Sequence record: MH221129.1
Length of the DNA stretch: 64,000 nt
Direction: 5' to 3' (one strand)
Shown here piece after piece: positions 48,342-56,022 of the stretch (position 1 is the stretch's first letter; the number at the start of each line of letters is the position of its first letter). The notes under the pieces were generated by a model. The model was given only the letters and a program-made list of their open reading frames with translations. It was not told the origin of the DNA and made no database searches. Made by a program: the position numbers and the translations under genes.

Positions 48342-48734
48342 ATGGCGATATCGATTAAAAACGTCCGTGACCGCTTGACCAACGTGGAAAACAATATGGC
48401 AACACAACCGCGTGTTGACCCACAAGTCGCGACGAAGGCGTATAACGCCGCAGACCGATTTGCAGGGTGGACGCCAGCGCAGCTGGATTGCGGGGGTACG
48501 TGCTCTTGGACGTGTTCCAACGGATGCTCACACGGGTGTTCGAGTTGTTCTGGTAGTTGCTCGGCCTCATGTATTGGTAGCTGTTCCTCTACATGCGGTG
48601 GTAACTGTTCCGGTTGTTCTGGTTGTTCCGGTGGCTGTAGTTCTAGCTGTACAGGTAACTGCTCAGGTGGGTGCGGTGGTTCTTGTTCATCGAACTGTTC
48701 AGGGGCTTGTTCGGGTGGCTGCTCTGGCCGATAG
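48342..48734 (+). CDS. CxxxC-repeat Cys/Ser/Gly-rich precursor peptide 1 (130 aa, 21 Cys)
   Basis: Cys-free N-region of 49 aa, then CGGTCSWTCSNGC...; AAGGAAG RBS. Confidence 0.85.
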   Translation: MAISIKNVRDRLTNVENNMATQPRVDPQVATKAYNAADRFAGWTPAQLDCGGTCSWTCSNGCSHGCSSCSGSCSASCIGSCSSTCGGNCSGCSGCSGGCSSSCTGNCSGGCGGSCSSNCSGACSGGCSGR

Positions 48735-48742
48735 GGGGAATA

Positions 48743-49144
48743 ATGGCAATCGGATTAAAAGCACTTAAATCTCGACTCGATGTAGTCGATGCTAATGCTT
48801 TAAAGAATACCACGAACGTGCAGAACTACATTCGTAACAAGGCAACGAATAACACTGATTTATTCGGCGGGCAACCGCGTGCGCATTACGACTGTGGCGG
48901 CACCTGTTCGTTTAGCTGCTCAAGCTGCTCCGGTGGATGTACCGGTTCTGCTTCGGGTGGCTGTGGCTCTACTTGTTCTGCAAACTGTGTCTCTGGTTGC
49001 TCCAGTAGTTGTACAGGTTGTAGTTCATCATGTTCGGGCGGTTGCTCCGGCAGCTGTACAGGTAACTGTTCAGGCGGCTGTGGTAAATCGTGCTCGGCAA
49101 ACTGTTCTGGTTCTTGCTCTGGCGGATGTTCTGGCCCGATGTAA
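48743..49144 (+). CDS. CxxxC-repeat precursor peptide 2 (133 aa, 20 Cys; start revised to MAIGLKA)
   Basis: GGGGGAA RBS; N-region homologous to peptide 1; core CGGTCSFSC... Confidence 0.85.
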   Translation: MAIGLKALKSRLDVVDANALKNTTNVQNYIRNKATNNTDLFGGQPRAHYDCGGTCSFSCSSCSGGCTGSASGGCGSTCSANCVSGCSSSCTGCSSSCSGGCSGSCTGNCSGGCGKSCSANCSGSCSGGCSGPM

Positions 49145-49156
49145 TGGAGGTTACCC

Positions 49157-49363
49157 GTGATAAGTCTCAAGAACGTTCGAGACCGCCTCGTCACTGCAGA
49201 GGGTTATCTCACCACCGCTCAAGCAAACAGCTACATCGCTAACCAGGGAACTGTGTCCACCACGAATAACCTGGCGTCTTTACCCTTGTCCCACTATAAC
49301 TGTAATGGTGGGTGTAGCTGGTCATGTAGCGGAAGCTGCAGCCGTGGCGCAGGAAATCGATAA
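49157..49363 (+). CDS. Short CxxxC precursor peptide 3 (68 aa, 4 Cys, GTG start)
   Basis: GGAGG RBS; ISLKNVRDRL is near-identical to the peptide 1 N-terminus; core CNGGCSWSCSGSC. Confidence 0.8.
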   Translation: MISLKNVRDRLVTAEGYLTTAQANSYIANQGTVSTTNNLASLPLSHYNCNGGCSWSCSGSCSRGAGNR

Positions 49364-49390: not shown

Positions 49391-50278
49391 ATGAAGAACG
49401 ATTTGCATCTTGCGTATAAAACCACGTTTAACCACCCACTGCATTTGTCATCACCCGACTCGGTTCGTGCACATCTTGCCGATCAGGTACGCTTGATTGC
49501 ACAGATTCCTGGCGAGTGGCCAAAGGTACGTGGACGTTTTCTTACCAATCCGGAAAACTATACCGTTGAAAATACGTTTAAGATCCGTGATATGGAAGCC
49601 CAAAGCATTGTTATCTTCAACGGCGATGGTAACTCTCGTGGGGTGTTGGTTGGCGGGAAGTATTTCTTCAGTGAAGGGATTTTGAATAACAGTGTGGACT
49701 TAGAATTAATGTTCACACCGTTTGATGAACTGGAAGCGAAACCGATGGCACGCCGTTGGTGGAGTCCGGATTATCTCGGTTCTTTCCCGTACTACTTTGT
49801 GCTGGTTCCAGTAGAAACTGAAACCTACTTTGATACCGAGCCGTATATCGATATCGAAGGCTACAAAGAGTTAGGCATCACCTGTCTCGCGGATATGATG
49901 GCGTATAGCTATAAGTTCGTCTGGGACAAACGTCGTTCGGTCTGGTACGCACTGACTGATGAGTTTGAAATCACTAAACGTATCCGCAAACCGTGGATGC
50001 AGCATTTAGTGCAGACCCGTCACGGTGATTATCCAGCAACCGAAGCCGACTTAAGTAAGCTGGTCAGTTTCTTACTGACGAAAGTTGACCTTACCGACGA
50101 AGAAGCGGAAGCGGTCTCTGAGTTCCGTTCCCGTGCTGTAACGTTGGCCGACTTAAAACGTCTGAACGAACGCCAGTACGACCTGAACAAAATCCTGGCC
50201 GCCTATCACTCGCCAATGCTGCTTGTGCCGGGGGCTAATGTAAACGAAGATCCTTTATTCGCTATTGACTATATTTAA
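49391..50278 (+). CDS. Unknown protein in the radical SAM/Cys-peptide cluster (295 aa)
   Basis: GGAG RBS; aromatic-rich, helical C-terminus; no recognisable motif. Confidence 0.75.
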   Translation: MKNDLHLAYKTTFNHPLHLSSPDSVRAHLADQVRLIAQIPGEWPKVRGRFLTNPENYTVENTFKIRDMEAQSIVIFNGDGNSRGVLVGGKYFFSEGILNNSVDLELMFTPFDELEAKPMARRWWSPDYLGSFPYYFVLVPVETETYFDTEPYIDIEGYKELGITCLADMMAYSYKFVWDKRRSVWYALTDEFEITKRIRKPWMQHLVQTRHGDYPATEADLSKLVSFLLTKVDLTDEEAEAVSEFRSRAVTLADLKRLNERQYDLNKILAAYHSPMLLVPGANVNEDPLFAIDYI

Positions 50279-50299: not shown

Positions 50300-51217
50300 A
50301 TGACAGACAAAGTAGAATCCAGGATCTCGTCTGAACTGTATGACAAACCGTCAATCCTGTCGGTTGTCACAACGTCTAAGTGTAACTTAGACTGTAGCTT
50401 CTGTGGAGGAGCCTATTACATGGATCGCGAGGACACTTCTCGTGAATTTCAACGCAGCCAGATTATGGAACAGCTTGAGCTGAACCCTGGCATTCAGGAG
50501 ATTCACTGGACGGGCGGTGAGCCGTTACTGGCACAGCGTAAAATTGAAGATTTCTTCTTCGAGCTTAAAGAATCACACCCGCACCTCAAACATCAGATGT
50601 ACACCAACGGTTTAAAGATGCGTAAGTCGCATCTGCCGATGCTGAAACAGTTCGACGTCATTTTCGTGTCTATCGACGGCTACACCAAGTCGGAACGTCC
50701 GTTTATGAACTTCATTAACGGCGGTAACCACGAAGCGTTGGAAACGCTGTATGAGCTGGACAACTATTACAGTTGGGGTGTCATGACCCGCGACCAGCTT
50801 GGTGACAAGCGTTGGTACGAAGACTTCATCGAGTTGCACCGTGCGCTGTATCACTACCGTCCAGGTGGTGTGTCGTTGCTGTTCGATGCGATGATGCCTA
50901 AACCGCTCTCGCCAGACCACGTCATGAACTTCATGTACGGATACTGGAAGATTCTGGATAATATCGAACGTCTGAATATGCAGAATGACACGGAATGTGG
51001 CTTGGCTATCAGCAAAATGTTTGATACCGAGTGTAACATCTGTAGCGAAGTGCTGTGGTTAAATGCCGATGGTGCCATCGAGCAAAACCAAAACGCTCCA
51101 GAGATTGTGAGTGTGGGCTGTAACCGACTGGCACGTTCCATCGGGGTTGAAGCTTACAATTACATCAACCGTGTTATTTCTGCTAAACGTATTCGGGCGG
51201 CTAAAAATGAGCAATGA
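50300..51217 (+). CDS. Radical SAM enzyme 1 (305 aa, short Cys-containing C-terminal extension)
   Basis: CNLDCSFC (CX3CX2C), WTGGEPLL, MYTNG, VSIDG; C-terminal CNIC...GC. Confidence 0.92.
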   Translation: MTDKVESRISSELYDKPSILSVVTTSKCNLDCSFCGGAYYMDREDTSREFQRSQIMEQLELNPGIQEIHWTGGEPLLAQRKIEDFFFELKESHPHLKHQMYTNGLKMRKSHLPMLKQFDVIFVSIDGYTKSERPFMNFINGGNHEALETLYELDNYYSWGVMTRDQLGDKRWYEDFIELHRALYHYRPGGVSLLFDAMMPKPLSPDHVMNFMYGYWKILDNIERLNMQNDTECGLAISKMFDTECNICSEVLWLNADGAIEQNQNAPEIVSVGCNRLARSIGVEAYNYINRVISAKRIRAAKNEQ

Positions 51218-52535
51218 CCAACCCATCCAGTATACCCCTCGCACTTATCAGGTCGTAACTAACCTGTCGTGCAACCTCGACTGCGAATATTGCTACGAGC
51301 GTAAATACCCGCGTAACAACAAAGCTGCTGACGTCATCGACTTTATCCACGCCTGTTTTGAGCGTGATAAAGATATCGAAAACGTAGAAGTCATCATCGA
51401 TATCATCGGTGGTGAGCCGTTCATGCAGCCGAAGTTGCTGATTGCTGCTTTTGAAACCGCAGAAGAGTTGTGCAAAATTCACAGCCGTCCGTACATGTTC
51501 AGTATTTCCACGAACGGTACGCTGCTCGATCGCCCACTGAACCGTGAGATTATCGACCGCTGGAAAGACAAGCTGTCTATCGGTGTGTCTATCGATGGTC
51601 TGCCGGAAGTACACGACAAATACCGTATCTTTACAACTACCCGTGAAGGGTCGTATGAAGCTGCGGTGAAAGGGTACAACTACCTGAAAGAAGTCGGTAT
51701 CGCAGAACTGGGCGTTAAAGCAACCTTCACCATCGACACATTGCCGCATTACGGCGCGAGCATGAAGTCGCTGATTGACATGGCGGGCGGTGGTACTATC
51801 TCCGGTAACGTAACGTACGAAGACATTCTGCCTCGTTCGATGGCGTTGGATATCGCTGCGCAGATGATGGACGTGATGGACTACTGGGTGGAAAAAGGTT
51901 TACACACCAACCCGCGTAACATCATCACCCACATCATTCCCGATGGCCTGGACTTCATGCAAATCTGGGACCCTGACTGGCGTGATAAACTGCTGCACGA
52001 CGACACGGTACGTCTGAACCCAGACCGCCTGCGTCCTTACTGCGGTACGCTGACGCACATGACTTGCTTAGGTTTCGACCGTAAGATTTATGGTTGTAAC
52101 CGATTCATGTCGACAGTTACTACACGTTCTGCTGTTGCGGAGCTGGTTGGCCGTGAGTTCGTTAGCCTGGATGGCGGTGCGCTGCTGGAAGAAATTCAGA
52201 CTCAGTACACCAACTACCCGGAAACCTGCCTGGGTTGCCCAATGAAACACAGCTGCGGTAGCTGCGCCGCTGCGTCTTACGAGAACGGCGAAGGGACACT
52301 GGAAGACCGTAAAGCATACCACGCTGAGCGTCGCCAGTGTGGTTGGACCACCGCTAAGCTGATGGCTGCGGAATACTGGTTCCAGAAAATGGGCAGCACC
52401 AAAGGTTCTGACTTCCATGACAAGTCAGTCTGCTATTGTGCACGTTGTGTGCGCCAACGCAAAGAAGCGAATATAAAACAACTATCCGGAGTTCAGAATG
52501 AAGTCGATACTGATTCACAATTTTACGAAGCGTAA
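51207..52535 (+). CDS. Radical SAM/SPASM peptide maturase (442 aa; start revised to MSNDQP)
   Basis: CNLDCEYC, IIGGEPF, ISTNGT, VSIDG; SPASM-like YCG..TC.GFD.KIYGC and CLGCPMKHSCGSC...C; extra CYCARC near the C-terminus. Confidence 0.92.
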   Translation: MSNDQPIQYTPRTYQVVTNLSCNLDCEYCYERKYPRNNKAADVIDFIHACFERDKDIENVEVIIDIIGGEPFMQPKLLIAAFETAEELCKIHSRPYMFSISTNGTLLDRPLNREIIDRWKDKLSIGVSIDGLPEVHDKYRIFTTTREGSYEAAVKGYNYLKEVGIAELGVKATFTIDTLPHYGASMKSLIDMAGGGTISGNVTYEDILPRSMALDIAAQMMDVMDYWVEKGLHTNPRNIITHIIPDGLDFMQIWDPDWRDKLLHDDTVRLNPDRLRPYCGTLTHMTCLGFDRKIYGCNRFMSTVTTRSAVAELVGREFVSLDGGALLEEIQTQYTNYPETCLGCPMKHSCGSCAAASYENGEGTLEDRKAYHAERRQCGWTTAKLMAAEYWFQKMGSTKGSDFHDKSVCYCARCVRQRKEANIKQLSGVQNEVDTDSQFYEA

Positions 52536-53064
52536 ACTACATCTGGTAGATCGTTTCTTGCGTAAGAAGAAACTCTACAACGTTCACGCTATCGTGTCCG
52601 GTGAAGACTTCACGGACGAGATTCAGGGCTTGCTGGTGAAGTACGGCCTGAATGTTATTATCCCTGTTACGTGTGTTGAACAGGGCCACGAATCGGTAGC
52701 GGAAATCGAGAAGCGTAACCCAGGTTTCGAAGCGCGTGTGTTGGCGTACCCTCGCCACAAAATCGAACTGCTTCGTCACTCGGGTTTGGAGCCTAGCCCG
52801 GAGAGTATTATTGCTCTCGGCCTGTCTTTCCCGCGCTTGCGCATTCGCAACCTGCGTAACACTACGCCGGTAGATGCCTACTACACTGAGCGTCAGATGT
52901 TTGAAGAATTCCTTTTCCCGCAGCTGGAAGAGGAAGAACAACATCAGATTTCGGTGCTGTGGGGCGGCGACCTCGATCAGAGCTTCTCATTGCTGGACTT
53001 CGGTTTGCTATTTGAACTTGACCTGATTGAGGAGGACGAATGTCTGCTTCTGACAAAAGCCTGA
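52498..53064 (+). CDS. Unknown protein in the radical SAM cluster (188 aa)
   Basis: Overlaps the rSAM2 3' end (38 nt) and the next gene (25 nt), consistent with coupling. Confidence 0.7.
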   Translation: MKSILIHNFTKRKLHLVDRFLRKKKLYNVHAIVSGEDFTDEIQGLLVKYGLNVIIPVTCVEQGHESVAEIEKRNPGFEARVLAYPRHKIELLRHSGLEPSPESIIALGLSFPRLRIRNLRNTTPVDAYYTERQMFEEFLFPQLEEEEQHQISVLWGGDLDQSFSLLDFGLLFELDLIEEDECLLLTKA

Positions 53065-53711
53065 CGAAAGATGAAATTCGCGCTCGTTATTTTGAGCGCG
53101 ATTTACCTATCGACCGGCACGGTAACTACATGGAGCGTATCGGGGCACAAGACCAGGGTCGTACCGGGTTCTGTGCGCTGTTGCATTACCATTTGATCGA
53201 AGGTATGTCCGACAAAGACGCACTGGCCAAGATGAAACTGTACGAAATGTCAGCCATCGAAGCCAACTTCACACTGAAACGTGCAAAAGAGTTCATTTCC
53301 GATGTTCTGGAAATCGACCTGGACGACATTCGTAAGAACATGAAGTCCACCGCACGTTACATCTACGAAGATGTGCAGAAGATGCTGCAGGAGTTAGACC
53401 ACCGCTACGAAGACCAACGTCACGGATTCATCGAGTTCGAAGGGTGTCATTTCCAGGCGGATGAAAACTCCCGTTCTATCCTCGGGCAATACATCCAGGC
53501 GAACCATGCTCCGGAATACTGGCTTGACACCACCAATACACGCATTGAGCCGTTTAGCGTGGAACAGTGTCAGGCGCTGTTAGCTGCCATTGTACAGCGT
53601 GACCAGGAACTCCACGCGACGATGTCAGACGCGAAGAAACAGATTCGTGTACTGGCAGAAGCGCGGGACTTCACCGGCCTGAAAGCGTTGCAAGAACAGC
53701 TTGGCATGTAA
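53040..53711 (+). CDS. DUF4376-like tail fibre assembly chaperone with N-terminal extra domain
   Basis: C-half FEGCHFQADENSR...WLDTTN...LLAAIVQR...KKQI fits the DUF4376 pattern. Confidence 0.7.
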   Translation: MSASDKSLTKDEIRARYFERDLPIDRHGNYMERIGAQDQGRTGFCALLHYHLIEGMSDKDALAKMKLYEMSAIEANFTLKRAKEFISDVLEIDLDDIRKNMKSTARYIYEDVQKMLQELDHRYEDQRHGFIEFEGCHFQADENSRSILGQYIQANHAPEYWLDTTNTRIEPFSVEQCQALLAAIVQRDQELHATMSDAKKQIRVLAEARDFTGLKALQEQLGM

Positions 53712-53725
53712 ATAAAAAAGAAAGT

Positions 53726-53749
53726 CCTCTCTACCCTAGGGTAGAGAGG
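53726..53749. terminator. Bidirectional terminator closing the fibre/rSAM operon
   Basis: CCTCTCTACCC-TA-GGGTAGAGAGG flanked by A- and T-runs. Confidence 0.85.
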
Positions 53750-53758
53750 TGCTTTTAT

Positions 53759-54268
53759 TTAATTGAACCCATCGAGGTCGCCGTACTTGGTCTGCAGATT
53801 ATCCTTACCATCGTAAACACGGTACACCATTGCGCCCGTCCACTTTAGATGCTCAGAATCAATCTTAACTTTGAATTCCGTCCAATCTTTCCCATCGTTC
53901 CCCGAACCCATCACCGTCAAAGTGATTTCGTCCAGGGTAAGTTTATGATCAGGTAAGAACTGATTAAAGTTGTACAAAACAAATTTGGGATCTGACCAGT
54001 AAGCTACCACATCGCCCATCGCTACGGTATAAACGTCTTCACCGTTCGGATGGGTGAAATCAAATCTTCGATAGTGGTATTCTTTACTTCCTGCGAATGG
54101 ACTGGCCGACTTTGCCGTCAACGTGAGCGCGGTATTACGCACATCGCCTTCCGTAGACGAAGCGTGTTTTGCCGGGCTACTGAAATCTACATCAGCCAAC
54201 GTCAGACCCAACCCTGGGTTCTTGGCATTCACTAAATCAATGATTTCTTCTTGCAAAGTCTTAGCCAT
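53759..54268 (-). CDS. Tail-associated paralog family A (GxLDGF C-terminus)
   Basis: LVNAKNPGL...FAG..YxR...GDLDGFN; GGAG RBS before ATG 54268. Confidence 0.75.
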   Translation of the reverse strand: MAKTLQEEIIDLVNAKNPGLGLTLADVDFSSPAKHASSTEGDVRNTALTLTAKSASPFAGSKEYHYRRFDFTHPNGEDVYTVAMGDVVAYWSDPKFVLYNFNQFLPDHKLTLDEITLTVMGSGNDGKDWTEFKVKIDSEHLKWTGAMVYRVYDGKDNLQTKYGDLDGFN

Positions 54269-54285
54269 CTGCAATCTCCAGGGGG

Positions 54286-54801
54286 TTAGTTAAAACCGTC
54301 CAATTCGCCATCAAGGCGACCGAGGTCTCTGACTTTTGGTGTTATCGTGTAGGTGAACCCCAGATGTCCGTTATCTGGCGGTAAGAACTTAATGCTGTTG
54401 GCGATGGAAACCATTACCACCAGGCGTCCATCTTCTGTCTCACTCCGACCGATGGTGAGTTCTTGCGCAGTAAATGCGTCGTCCGGCCAGGTTTGCTGTA
54501 GCCGCGCATTCATTTGGTCGAGCACGTAAGCGTCGTCATCCCAACGTTCCGGATTGCTTGAGTTCCAGGCGTCGTCGGTAATTCCCGATGGAACACGGTT
54601 ATAGTAGATAGTCATCGACCCAGCGAAATAGAGCGATTCTTCTTTCGCTGTGAGATACGACATCGTATTCCATTTGTTGGGATCTGGACTACCCATCATC
54701 GGGTTGTCGTAAATCTCGATATCATCTAAAGTTGCCGGATGGGGTAAATTGGGATTGGCTGCATTATACAGCGCGAGGAGTTGCTCTTTTGAAGATGCCA
54801 T
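54286..54801 (-). CDS. Tail-associated paralog family A
   Basis: LYNAANPNL...FAG..YNR...GELDGFN. Confidence 0.75.
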   Translation of the reverse strand: MASSKEQLLALYNAANPNLPHPATLDDIEIYDNPMMGSPDPNKWNTMSYLTAKEESLYFAGSMTIYYNRVPSGITDDAWNSSNPERWDDDAYVLDQMNARLQQTWPDDAFTAQELTIGRSETEDGRLVVMVSIANSIKFLPPDNGHLGFTYTITPKVRDLGRLDGELDGFN

Positions 54802-54890
54802 GATGGGCTCCTTGTGTTGCGAAAAGAAAGTCCATGTGGTTCGCCATCTAAGCGTGGTGATACCCGTGCAGGTGAATTATTTTAGAGTAA

Positions 54891-55430
54891 TTAGTTAGGG
54901 ACACCAAAGCCGTCTAACTCGCCGTTCGTCGTGGAAAGATCAGTTTTCACAACAGCTTCATAGATCGAGTAGACGATAACCGCATCTTCAAATTTCATGT
55001 GGTTACGAATAGTGATGGTGATATCCAACGTTTGTGCGTTCTCACCTTCAGCACGACTAATGGAGAAACTTCCGTTCTCACCGCTGTCGTCTGGCCCCAG
55101 TTCATCAATAGGGTACTGACGTTGTAAGTCGGCGTTCAGCTGGGTGAGAACTGCACTGTCTTCAGCCCAATCGCTGTGATTACCGTCGATGGTTTCACCT
55201 GTGAAACCAACAGGTAAACGACGATACACGAGCGAGATATCGCCAGTGAAATACTGACTTTCTGCTTTGGCTGAGATGTTCAGAATAAAATTAGCAAGAC
55301 TCTCACCTTCGGGAGTCTTGCTACTGCGTGAACCCGCAGAGAAGTCATTAACCGTTAATGGGTGTGGTAGGGTAGGGTTAGCCGCGTTGTACAAATCACA
55401 CAGTTGCTGTTTGGTCGAAATCGTTGCCAT
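54891..55430 (-). CDS. Tail-associated paralog family A
   Basis: LYNAANPTL...FTG..YRR...GELDGFGVPN. Confidence 0.75.
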   Translation of the reverse strand: MATISTKQQLCDLYNAANPTLPHPLTVNDFSAGSRSSKTPEGESLANFILNISAKAESQYFTGDISLVYRRLPVGFTGETIDGNHSDWAEDSAVLTQLNADLQRQYPIDELGPDDSGENGSFSISRAEGENAQTLDITITIRNHMKFEDAVIVYSIYEAVVKTDLSTTNGELDGFGVPN

Positions 55431-55462
55431 GGTTACTCCTTAGTGGCAATTAAAAAATAAAA

Positions 55463-55480
55463 GAGGGGCCGTAGCCCCTC
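55463..55480 (-). terminator. Intrinsic terminator with cUACGg loop
   Basis: GAGGGGC-TACG-GCCCCTC then TTTTATTTTTT. Confidence 0.8.
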
Positions 55481-55488
55481 TGGCTTAT

Positions 55489-56022
55489 TTAGTTAGGAAC
55501 GCCGAAACCGTCCAGTTCACCGTTAGTGGTGCTCAGGTCAGTCTTCACGATCTCCTGGGTGATGGTGTAGACCGCAATAGTGCCTTCCTGGTATTTGATG
55601 TGACCATCTTTTACCAGTACGGTAATCACTTTCGCACCGTCCTGACCATCAGTACGTTCGAAAGTCAGTTCACTGACCGCGAAAGCATCATCGGGGCGAC
55701 CTTTGGCTTGCAAGTCGGTGTTAACAAAAGCCAGCACTTCTTCGTCGGTGTCCCAGTCCGCCTGATCGGCAGTAACGGCTTTGTTACCGATGAGGTTAGC
55801 AGAAGCCATGCGGGTGTAGTGTAATTCTTTCTCGCCGGTGAAATACTGAGACCCACCGACTGCGGTGATCGTGAGTTTGGTATTACGGCCATCGACCGGG
55901 TCAGCAACATAGTCACTTGCCGTGCCGAAGGTAACATCCGCAGAGGTTAACGCTTGCGCCAGACCGGAGTTTTTGGTGTTGAACAAAGCAACGAGTTGAT
56001 CTTGAAATGAAACAATAGCCAT
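55489..56022 (-). CDS. Tail-associated paralog family A
   Basis: LFNTKNSGL...FTG..YTR...GELDGFGVPN. Confidence 0.75.
   Translation of the reverse strand: MAIVSFQDQLVALFNTKNSGLAQALTSADVTFGTASDYVADPVDGRNTKLTITAVGGSQYFTGEKELHYTRMASANLIGNKAVTADQADWDTDEEVLAFVNTDLQAKGRPDDAFAVSELTFERTDGQDGAKVITVLVKDGHIKYQEGTIAVYTITQEIVKTDLSTTNGELDGFGVPN

Follow-up and report, generated by a model that had tools for sequence, protein, structure and literature searches.

Introduction

Why does a bacteriophage encode, side by side, two radical S-adenosylmethionine (SAM) enzymes of different build, in one gene series with small peptides full of Cys residues? The question is raised by a stretch of 64,000 nucleotides (nt) from sequence record MH221129.1 (this whole stretch is called here the window), where the gene of a short radical SAM enzyme, rSAM1, is followed by that of a longer radical SAM/SPASM enzyme, rSAM2, both of them downstream of three Cys-repeat peptides and of a 295-residue accessory protein (Table 1). 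The window belongs to an SPN3US-like jumbo phage: the 5 kb around these genes are 100% identical to the Salmonella phages STsAS and SPAsTU, and to SPN3US and related phages (genus Seoulvirus, jumbo phages of ~240 kb) their identity is about 80%. A first-pass annotation of the sequence had suggested a division of labour between two chemistries, for instance a thioether ladder made by one enzyme and a crosslink on the only aromatic residue of each peptide made by the other. Are the two enzymes really coupled, and is that aromatic residue the reason for having two of them?

The known radical SAM/SPASM maturases act in the making of peptide natural products; here such enzymes are encoded next to phage tail-fibre genes. 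Our literature search found no publication on a phage system of two radical SAM enzymes and a Cys-repeat substrate, and nothing relevant on the CXXX-repeat/TIGR04115 system either. The reading that we lean towards, believing it somewhat more than we doubt it, is that a single maturation machine, of which rSAM1 and rSAM2 each form one catalytic half, modifies the Cys-repeat peptides together with the accessory protein. Both enzymes would cleave SAM; rSAM2, related to the CXXX-repeat, PapB and CteB maturases, would most likely install Cys-derived thioether links along the repeats, and rSAM1, a truncated, twitch-like relative with a putative three-Cys auxiliary cluster, would subject this substrate to another radical step. 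Elsewhere among phages, the machine would act on a Cys-repeat module of this kind that terminates a tail fibre, and the conserved Trp or Phe near the repeat start would more likely serve recognition or packing than be a partner in a crosslink requiring a second enzyme.

Linkage and recurrent fusion of the two enzymes

Wherever a complete jumbo phage encodes rSAM1 or rSAM2, the gene of the other enzyme lies beside it (about 70 records). rSAM2 is the more conserved of the two, with 62-76% identity to its orthologues in Erwinia and Cronobacter phages versus 40-55% for rSAM1, and both are under strong purifying selection, as judged from their ratios of non-synonymous to synonymous substitution relative to SPN3US (0.075 for rSAM1, 0.052 for rSAM2 and 0.027 for the accessory protein, gp165, with synonymous sites near saturation). 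The linkage extends well beyond this clade. The distant relatives of rSAM2 (32-40% identity) lie on phage and prophage contigs, and a short radical SAM enzyme (250-320 residues) adjoins the SPASM gene, in either order, at 11 loci, to which we refer by our own numbers (L002, L003, L010, L011, L012, L014, L246, L247, L248, L249 and L250; L002 is a Deferribacter prophage, and L003 and L250 are T4-like or large phages). Most loci encode the short enzyme upstream of the SPASM gene, L011 and L249 downstream of it; it carries CX3CX2C and GGEP, and in most cases three late Cys (C-x1-3-C ... GC). Four parts recur in nearly all of these distant loci, i.e., a fibre-like protein or small peptide with a terminal Cys-X3 repeat, a gp165 homologue, the short radical SAM enzyme and the SPASM enzyme. 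Scans of genome and metagenome contigs with an rSAM2 profile returned almost only generic SPASM enzymes, with at most 31% identity, and added no two-enzyme loci.

The two enzymes are even found as one protein. At L013 they form a single chain of 686 residues, and a protein search with this fusion retrieved P0156 (93% identity), P0157 and P0158 (50%), P0159 and P0160 (34%), and P0162; in all these fusions, of 600-690 residues, the short enzyme forms the N-terminal part and the SPASM enzyme the C-terminal one. Two CX3CX2C and two GGEP motifs are present in all full-length fusions inspected (L013, P0157, P0159 and P0160), P0162 being truncated at its N-terminus, and the surroundings of P0159 and P0160 include, once more, a Cys-repeat fibre and a gp165-like gene. 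Fusions occur in at least two lineages and, since the SPASM half of P0160 is similar to the SPASM enzyme of L014, which has a gene of its own, the fusion probably arose more than once. Nothing else argues as strongly as this recurrence that both active sites are required and act together, and because the enzymes are repeatedly found fused, rSAM1 and rSAM2 would work side by side, probably in contact. The part of the earlier proposal that supposed two differently equipped enzymes working as a pair is thus supported, indirectly, by their adjacency, their fusions, the SAM motifs kept in both, and the existence of a sister family with one enzyme.

That sister family comprises most of the other matches on viral contigs (L015-L084), which are true members of TIGR04115 (388-434 bits, with one at 294) encoded beside TIGR04114 repeat proteins. 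About 65 of these 70 loci have a single radical SAM enzyme. A profile search detected a gp165-like gene (215-295 residues) in each of the 19 two-enzyme loci that it covered, and in not one of the 70 one-enzyme loci. The true TIGR04115 enzymes have a longer N-terminus than rSAM2, and the first half of the SPASM domain contains two Cys in the one-enzyme family (WCGGxGxML...DGxxYPC) versus three in the two-enzyme family (CGxxxHMxCLGFDxKxYGC). In other words, a canonical SPASM domain of seven Cys goes with the family in which the enzyme is alone; where there is a partner, the SPASM enzyme has one more conserved Cys, and the partner a separate three-Cys domain.

Some of the distant loci show arrangements of their own. 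At a prophage-like locus (L246:4306-7134) three radical SAM genes follow one another before the end of the fibre module, two of them short (one rSAM1-like, the other with a C-terminal motif of CX3CX5C type) and the third of SPASM type. In L003 (L003:3325-6001) and L004 the short radical SAM protein has 472 residues, with a second half that looks like a degenerate radical SAM barrel without the Cys motif, and a separate barrel fragment of 157 residues is encoded upstream. A large phage contig with the two-enzyme module (L249:1234-3502) also encodes, a few kb upstream, two S-adenosylmethionine lyases (PF23780), so that this phage, curiously, seems both to destroy SAM and to depend on it.

Architecture of rSAM2 and rSAM1

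The true start of rSAM2 lies at 51207, with an overlap of 11 nt with the stop of rSAM1; the start of the longest open reading frame (ORF), at 51111, is unused in annotated relatives. The protein matches PF04055 above the cut-off, and CX3CX2C, GGEP and TNG are invariant in the alignment of its family (20 homologues, down to 32% identity). The SPASM-type Cys set noticed in the first-pass annotation is there, and it proves to hold eight Cys: the seven of the SPASM pattern, with X2 rather than X3 as the last spacing, and an additional one, C287. All of them are invariant in the alignment except C287 (~95% kept), and they are predicted to bind clusters. The C-terminal CYCARC, also described before, is found at residues 409-414; a CxCxxC-like tail is kept throughout the jumbo-phage clade and is missing from many distant members of the family; it is an accessory feature. 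The Cys spacing of this tail resembles that of the presumed substrate, and the tail might bind a metal or act as a pseudo-substrate.

As for its kinship, the best NCBIfam match of rSAM2 is TIGR04115, with 121 bits in two stretches (cut-off 350), followed by PapB with 108 bits (cut-off 340). rSAM2 was accordingly not taken as a member of TIGR04115, nor as a ranthipeptide maturase of PapB type; the peptide cores also have no acceptor of the Cys-X3-Asp type, i.e., no in-register Asp or Glu. The genomic context that goes with TIGR04115 is present, with three repeat peptides 2-3 kb upstream of rSAM2 in the same gene series. In a sequence search of the PDB, CteB was the best match and ChlB the second, and residue 21 of rSAM2 aligns to residue 106 of CteB, so that rSAM2 is devoid of the N-terminal peptide-recognition (RRE) domain.

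rSAM1 starts at an ATG at 50300 with GGAG eight bases upstream, which restores its CX3CX2C motif; the deposited annotations of STsAS and SPN3US place the start of the short enzyme 120 nt late, at an internal Met (window position 50420), and the motif is lost. Its match to PF04055 (1.2e-14) lies above the cut-off, making it a member of the radical SAM superfamily. In an alignment of 20 homologues of 290-310 residues each, all from jumbo-phage-like contigs and down to 40% identity, GGEP and TNG are invariant, and so are exactly six Cys: 28, 32, 35, 245, 248 and 274. The earlier description of a shorter protein with only CNIC...C after the barrel is therefore accurate as to the conserved residues; a further post-barrel Cys, C233, was considered as a fourth cluster ligand and rejected, as it is not conserved among the homologues. 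Family matches are confined to the first 130 residues (AF0577-type, viperin, NrdG, MoaA, HxsC and PapB), all far below cut-off and, judging by these, rSAM1 falls in no described family.

The AlphaFold model of rSAM1 (pLDDT, the predicted local distance difference test, 86) has the barrel, then a hairpin (strands 251-254 and 260-262), then helices, with C245 and C248 preceding the hairpin strands and C274 preceding helix 275-281. The model aligns with SPASM enzymes all the way to the C-terminus, and its layout resembles a truncated form of the SPASM domain ("twitch"), in which three Cys are candidate cluster ligands. In a fold search, with 272-277 of the 305 residues superposed, the best matches were CteB (Z 18.2), TigE (17.9), ChlB (17.4) and anSME (16.9); SuiB, viperins, SkfB (14.5), MoaA (14.1) and EpeE (12.6) scored lower. 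The four best are tied within about one Z unit and run four different chemistries (thioether, cyclopropane, cyclophane and oxidation, respectively), due to which the fold does not reveal the reaction. The possibility that rSAM1 is a recent truncated copy of rSAM2, with which it is lumped in phrog_1802, was rejected, since only the barrels of the two align (23% identity, E 5e-11); the pair is old.

The Cys-repeat peptides and their aromatic residue

Each of the three peptide cores has a single W or F, and that of peptide 1 also has one His. The earlier statement that this aromatic residue occupies an equivalent position in every core holds far beyond the window: all 27 peptides from ten jumbo phages of five genera open with CxGxCS[W/F]xC, the anchor position being W throughout except for F in Seoulvirus peptide 2, and one peptide having a further Tyr. 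Such a fixed anchor reflects conservation and not chance. The repeats are only marginally similar to the TIGR04114 model (peptide 1, 18.9 bits, with a cut-off of 20), and all three peptides are omitted from the STsAS annotation. The core of peptide 3, of 20 residues and ending in RGAGNR, is presumably a natural minimal substrate; it consists of the opening motif and one more Cys, and therefore the opening motif may be a functional unit by itself. Peptide 3 is kept in the Seoulvirus, Machinavirus and Erskinevirus genomes examined, and a scan did not detect it in CR5, EarlPhillipIV and Kwan.

The distant fibres present two types of opening. The first, CSW[T/S]C (CTWTC in L012), usually preceded by GQxxxYY(R)C, is found in L002, L003, L010, L012, L014, L246, L247, L250, L257 and L258. 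The second (…I-x-T/I-G-C-x-x-G-C…, or just GCSGCSGSC) is without an aromatic residue in that place and is found in L009, L011, L013, L248 and L249; the cores of L011, L248 and L249 have no aromatic residue at all, and that of L013 has a single late Tyr off the anchor. Four of these five loci (L011, L013, L248 and L249) retain both enzymes or their fusion, and fusions as such are found with both types of opening. Because both enzymes occur with both repeat starts, neither of them tracks the aromatic residue. Furthermore, W and F interchange among paralogous peptides, and in the one-enzyme family the second unit reads C[S/T/A][G/S]LC in 24 of 39 distinct repeat starts, with V, M or F in the same place in several more. 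Taken together, these data suggest that a conserved hydrophobic residue near the repeat start is a general trait of Cys-X3 repeat substrates, and that the presence of a second enzyme is independent of it. As a separate observation on substrate form, a high-GC, prophage-like locus (L248:4017-4256) encodes a free-standing Cys-repeat peptide of 79 residues right after a T7-type tail-fibre gene, which parallels the separate peptides of the jumbo phages.

What does the second enzyme add?

Thioether formation by at least one of the two enzymes is our best guess by homology, and thioether and cyclophane chemistry are inseparable by sequence and fold. The idea that gave rise to the question, with one enzyme making a thioether ladder and the other crosslinking the lone aromatic residue (by a three-residue cyclophane on W-T-C, or by a Cys-Trp link), has some appeal: the anchor is fixed in all the jumbo-phage peptides and opens many distant fibres as CSW[T/S]C, W-T-C suits the aromatic-X-X pattern of triceptides, and ChlB is among the tied fold matches of rSAM1 and comes second in the PDB search with rSAM2. 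Nonetheless, it seems to us unlikely, as four loci without the anchor aromatic keep both enzymes or their fusion, neither enzyme follows that residue, the Leu in its place in the one-enzyme family points to a hydrophobic mark, W and F interchange among paralogues, and the cyclophane synthase YhhB matches rSAM2 with 61 and rSAM1 with 34 bits, versus a cut-off of 445 (XyeB was not among the top matches of rSAM2). No cyclophane family cut-off being reached, and the enzymes persisting where the anchor aromatic is missing, neither one was taken as a cyclophane synthase. The aromatic crosslink is not supported as the explanation of the second enzyme. A Trp crosslink in the W-type lineages is conceivable, although weakened, and it is not what the enzyme pair is for. 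Doubtful too, but easier to credit, is that both enzymes make the same Cys thioether at different places, be it at the opening motif versus the repeats, at 4- versus 3-residue spacings, or within versus between the chains of a trimeric fibre. Both are structurally nearest to peptide-crosslinking SPASM and twitch enzymes, the substrate has two parts (a conserved opening motif and a variable repeat, peptide 3 being little else than the former), and the auxiliary cluster of rSAM1 would have three Cys; in enzymes with a cluster of this kind, the fourth iron is presumed to take up a Cys of the substrate. However, TIGR04115 enzymes handle very similar repeats, including a conserved opening motif, with one enzyme, and the three-Cys site is absent from the fused forms.

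No more probable than the aromatic crosslink is that rSAM1 performs, before or after rSAM2, some tailoring other than crosslinking, such as epimerisation, dehydrogenation of Ser or Cys, or other hydrogen-atom chemistry. The place of rSAM1 outside the described families, with matches over its N-terminal part only, would leave room for it, as would the presence of anSME and of the epimerase EpeE among its fold matches and the richness of the repeats in Ser, Thr and Gly. Yet EpeE ranks well below the crosslinking enzymes, and whereas YydG/EpeE-type epimerases have an extra conserved Cys that serves as hydrogen-atom donor, rSAM1 has no invariant Cys besides the six presumed ligands. Last, could only one of the enzymes be catalytic on the peptide, with the other as a scaffold, an electron-relay partner or a chaperone? 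In the fusions the short enzyme has lost its auxiliary Cys, as would fit a sharing of clusters, and one locus has no short enzyme; but CX3CX2C, GGEP and TNG are invariant in both families, and kept in the fusions, which is unexpected for a non-catalytic partner and renders this option very improbable.

The two-halves reading that we prefer has, for its part, several points to answer. The locus just mentioned, L009, has a SPASM enzyme and an accessory protein, with no short radical SAM enzyme within the available sequence. The fused short domains are without the three late Cys; that cluster is therefore not essential to the reaction of the short enzyme, which suggests that the auxiliary cluster of rSAM1 is replaceable when SPASM clusters share its chain. 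rSAM2 scores far under the cut-offs of both TIGR04115 and PapB, and for the rSAM1 and rSAM2 families, as for TIGR04115 itself, any chemistry is a prediction. Moreover, one auxiliary cluster of CteB has a free iron which binds the substrate Cys, and in anSME that cluster is fully ligated. The extra C287 may close in rSAM2 the very site that CteB-like thioether synthases presumably use for the substrate Cys, and hence rSAM2 may not be the thioether enzyme and the three-Cys rSAM1 could be. By Cys counts, it is rSAM1 that has a putative three-Cys, possibly open-site cluster, and the thioether role could fall to rSAM1 as well as to rSAM2. Finally, for the two adjacent radical SAM enzymes of the bacterial HXS system (see below), HxsC was found to bind HxsD, and no stable HxsB-HxsC complex was seen (PMC13128918).

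Keeping to two catalytic halves of one machine, a bolder version can be put forward tentatively, as possible rather than probable: a phage machine with two radical SAM active sites (one of twitch type, the other with an eight-Cys SPASM domain, sometimes fused, and with an adaptor of its own) would build a cross-linked Cys ladder on virion fibres, and the second enzyme would add a chemistry that the one-enzyme family does not perform, such as a knot at CxGxCSWxC or interchain links. What would this mean? At the least, there is a conserved four-part phage module made of a SPASM enzyme, a differently built second radical SAM enzyme from a family apparently outside those described, an adaptor-like protein and a presumed Cys-repeat substrate, and the comparative data weaken the idea of a lone tryptophan as the reason for the second enzyme. 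If the two-enzyme machine is real, it would be a case of double radical chemistry of the kind known from RiPPs (peptides that are made by the ribosome and then modified post-translationally), applied to a structural part of a virus and involving a new enzyme family, that of rSAM1. If it yields fibre parts that are cross-linked, viruses would have in stapling by enzymes a novel means of building their host-recognition apparatus. SPN3US, with its amber-mutant system, and the 68-residue peptide 3 as a putative natural minimal substrate make the system tractable.

Organization of the locus

The plus strand carries, with short gaps or overlaps, the peptides, the accessory protein, rSAM1, rSAM2, an ORF of 188 residues and a DUF4376 protein. 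The last two are restricted to the jumbo-phage clade and probably share the transcription unit of the radical SAM enzymes, the series ending at a strong terminator-like hairpin. The accessory protein, a candidate substrate adaptor, had no match in Pfam (searched with 17 members of its family), in the PDB (profile search) or in the ESM Atlas. In SPN3US, the neighbours on the other side of gp165 are gp166, a Cys-repeat peptide, gp167, a virion structural protein, and gp168, a large tail protein, about which Thomas et al. 2016 say only that it is a tail protein. The GenBank labels "protein 1" and "protein 2" are reversed relative to the rSAM1/rSAM2 numbering used here. Directly beyond the terminator, on the minus strand (53759-56022), there are four tandem paralogous ORFs of 171-179 residues, each ending in GELDGF(N or GVPN), that match phrog_4862 and, more weakly, virion structural protein families.

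Table 1. Features of the two-enzyme locus, in window coordinates (aa, amino acids).
Feature	Position	Strand	Description	SPN3US counterpart
Cys-repeat peptide 1	48342..48734	+	130 aa; core start CGGTCSWTC, 21 Cys; presumed substrate; phrog_6085 (6e-42)	
Cys-repeat peptide 2	48746..49144	+	132 aa; core start CGGTCSFSC, 20 Cys; phrog_6085 (1e-40)	
Cys-repeat peptide 3	49157..49363	+	68 aa; CNGGCSWSC plus one more Cys (4 Cys); phrog_6085 (1.5e-23)	
Accessory protein	49391..50278	+	295 aa; phrog_8030; candidate substrate adaptor	gp165
rSAM1	50300..51217	+	305 aa; short radical SAM enzyme with twitch-like C-terminal domain	gp164
rSAM1 CX3CX2C	50381..50404	+	CNLDCSFC, residues 28-35; predicted ligands of the SAM-cleaving cluster; invariant in 20 homologues	
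rSAM1 candidate auxiliary-cluster Cys	51032..51121	+	C245 and C248 (CNIC) before the beta-hairpin, C274 before the final helices	
rSAM2	51207..52535	+	442 aa; radical SAM/SPASM enzyme	gp163
rSAM2 CX3CX2C	51270..51293	+	CNLDCEYC, residues 22-29; invariant	
rSAM2 SPASM domain	52041..52340	+	Eight Cys: C279, C287, C297, C341-x2-C344-x5-C350-x2-C353, C378	
rSAM2 C-terminal tail	52431..52448	+	CYCARC; C409, C411, C414	
Two overlapping downstream genes	52498..53711	+	188 aa (phrog_7988); 223 aa (DUF4376)	
Terminator-like hairpin	53726..53749	.	Strong, two-way; ends the plus-strand gene series	

Comparison with known systems

The CXXX-repeat system (a TIGR04115 enzyme with a TIGR04114, PF27846 repeat) was defined from genome context alone, and its true members are common on viral contigs. 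Like rSAM2, its SPASM enzyme is encoded beside repeats rich in Ser, Thr and Gly with Cys at every fourth residue. However, the true members have neither a short radical SAM partner nor an accessory protein, their seven-Cys SPASM domain has no equivalent of C287, and their repeats open with C[S/T]GLC instead of the CSW[T/S]C of the phage two-enzyme repeats. PapB and CteB (PDB 5wgg/5why) share with the phage enzymes the order of SAM barrel and SPASM domain and the Cys-rich substrates, CteB being, among solved structures, nearest to rSAM2 in sequence and to rSAM1 in fold; unlike them, both phage enzymes lack the N-terminal recognition domain, and rSAM1 also lacks the second half of the SPASM domain. 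rSAM1 resembles twitch enzymes (SkfB, MoaA and BtrN) in its layout, a barrel followed by a short hairpin and a helix flanked by CX2C...C, with no CX2CX5CX3C block, but it has no sequence membership in any twitch family (N_Twi_rSAM, 40 bits versus 170, over the N-terminus only), and its cluster binding is predicted from the model. The triceptide synthases (ChlB, XyeB and YhhB), among which ChlB has been described as a cyclophane synthase (PMC12912966), are SPASM enzymes acting on an aromatic-X-X motif, and their link to the phage pair is ChlB as a tied fold neighbour of rSAM1.

Two further systems are closer in what they modify or in how they are composed, and the phage module belongs to the family of neither. 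CrpC, a SPASM enzyme of Methanococcus voltae, makes ranthionine thioethers on a Cys-repeat protein of 29 kDa, and a paralogous neighbour improves the modification (PMC13692751). CrpC/CrpA (TIGR04463) and the phage system have in common a large Cys-repeat protein as substrate, rather than a short peptide, and paralogous substrates that share their N-terminal region; CrpC, nevertheless, is a single enzyme with its own recognition domain, acts on a 17-residue C-X-X-Q/D repeat, and is archaeal, with no virion context. In the bacterial HXS defence system, maturation of the repeat protein HxsA needs two adjacent radical SAM enzymes, HxsB and HxsC, as well as the small protein HxsD (PMC13128918). Like the phage module, HXS combines two unlike adjacent radical SAM enzymes (one long, one shorter) with a partner protein and a repeat substrate, and HxsC is the top match of the short enzyme of the Deferribacter prophage, with 49 bits. 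The identity of the phage pair as HxsB and HxsC was rejected, the matches being of 73 bits for rSAM2 to HxsB and 38 bits for rSAM1 to HxsC versus cut-offs of 370 and 268, and the phage substrate being of Cys-X3 and not His-X-Ser type. Besides, one system serves anti-phage defence and the other would be a structural module of the phage itself, in which, in addition, the two enzymes have recurrently been fused.

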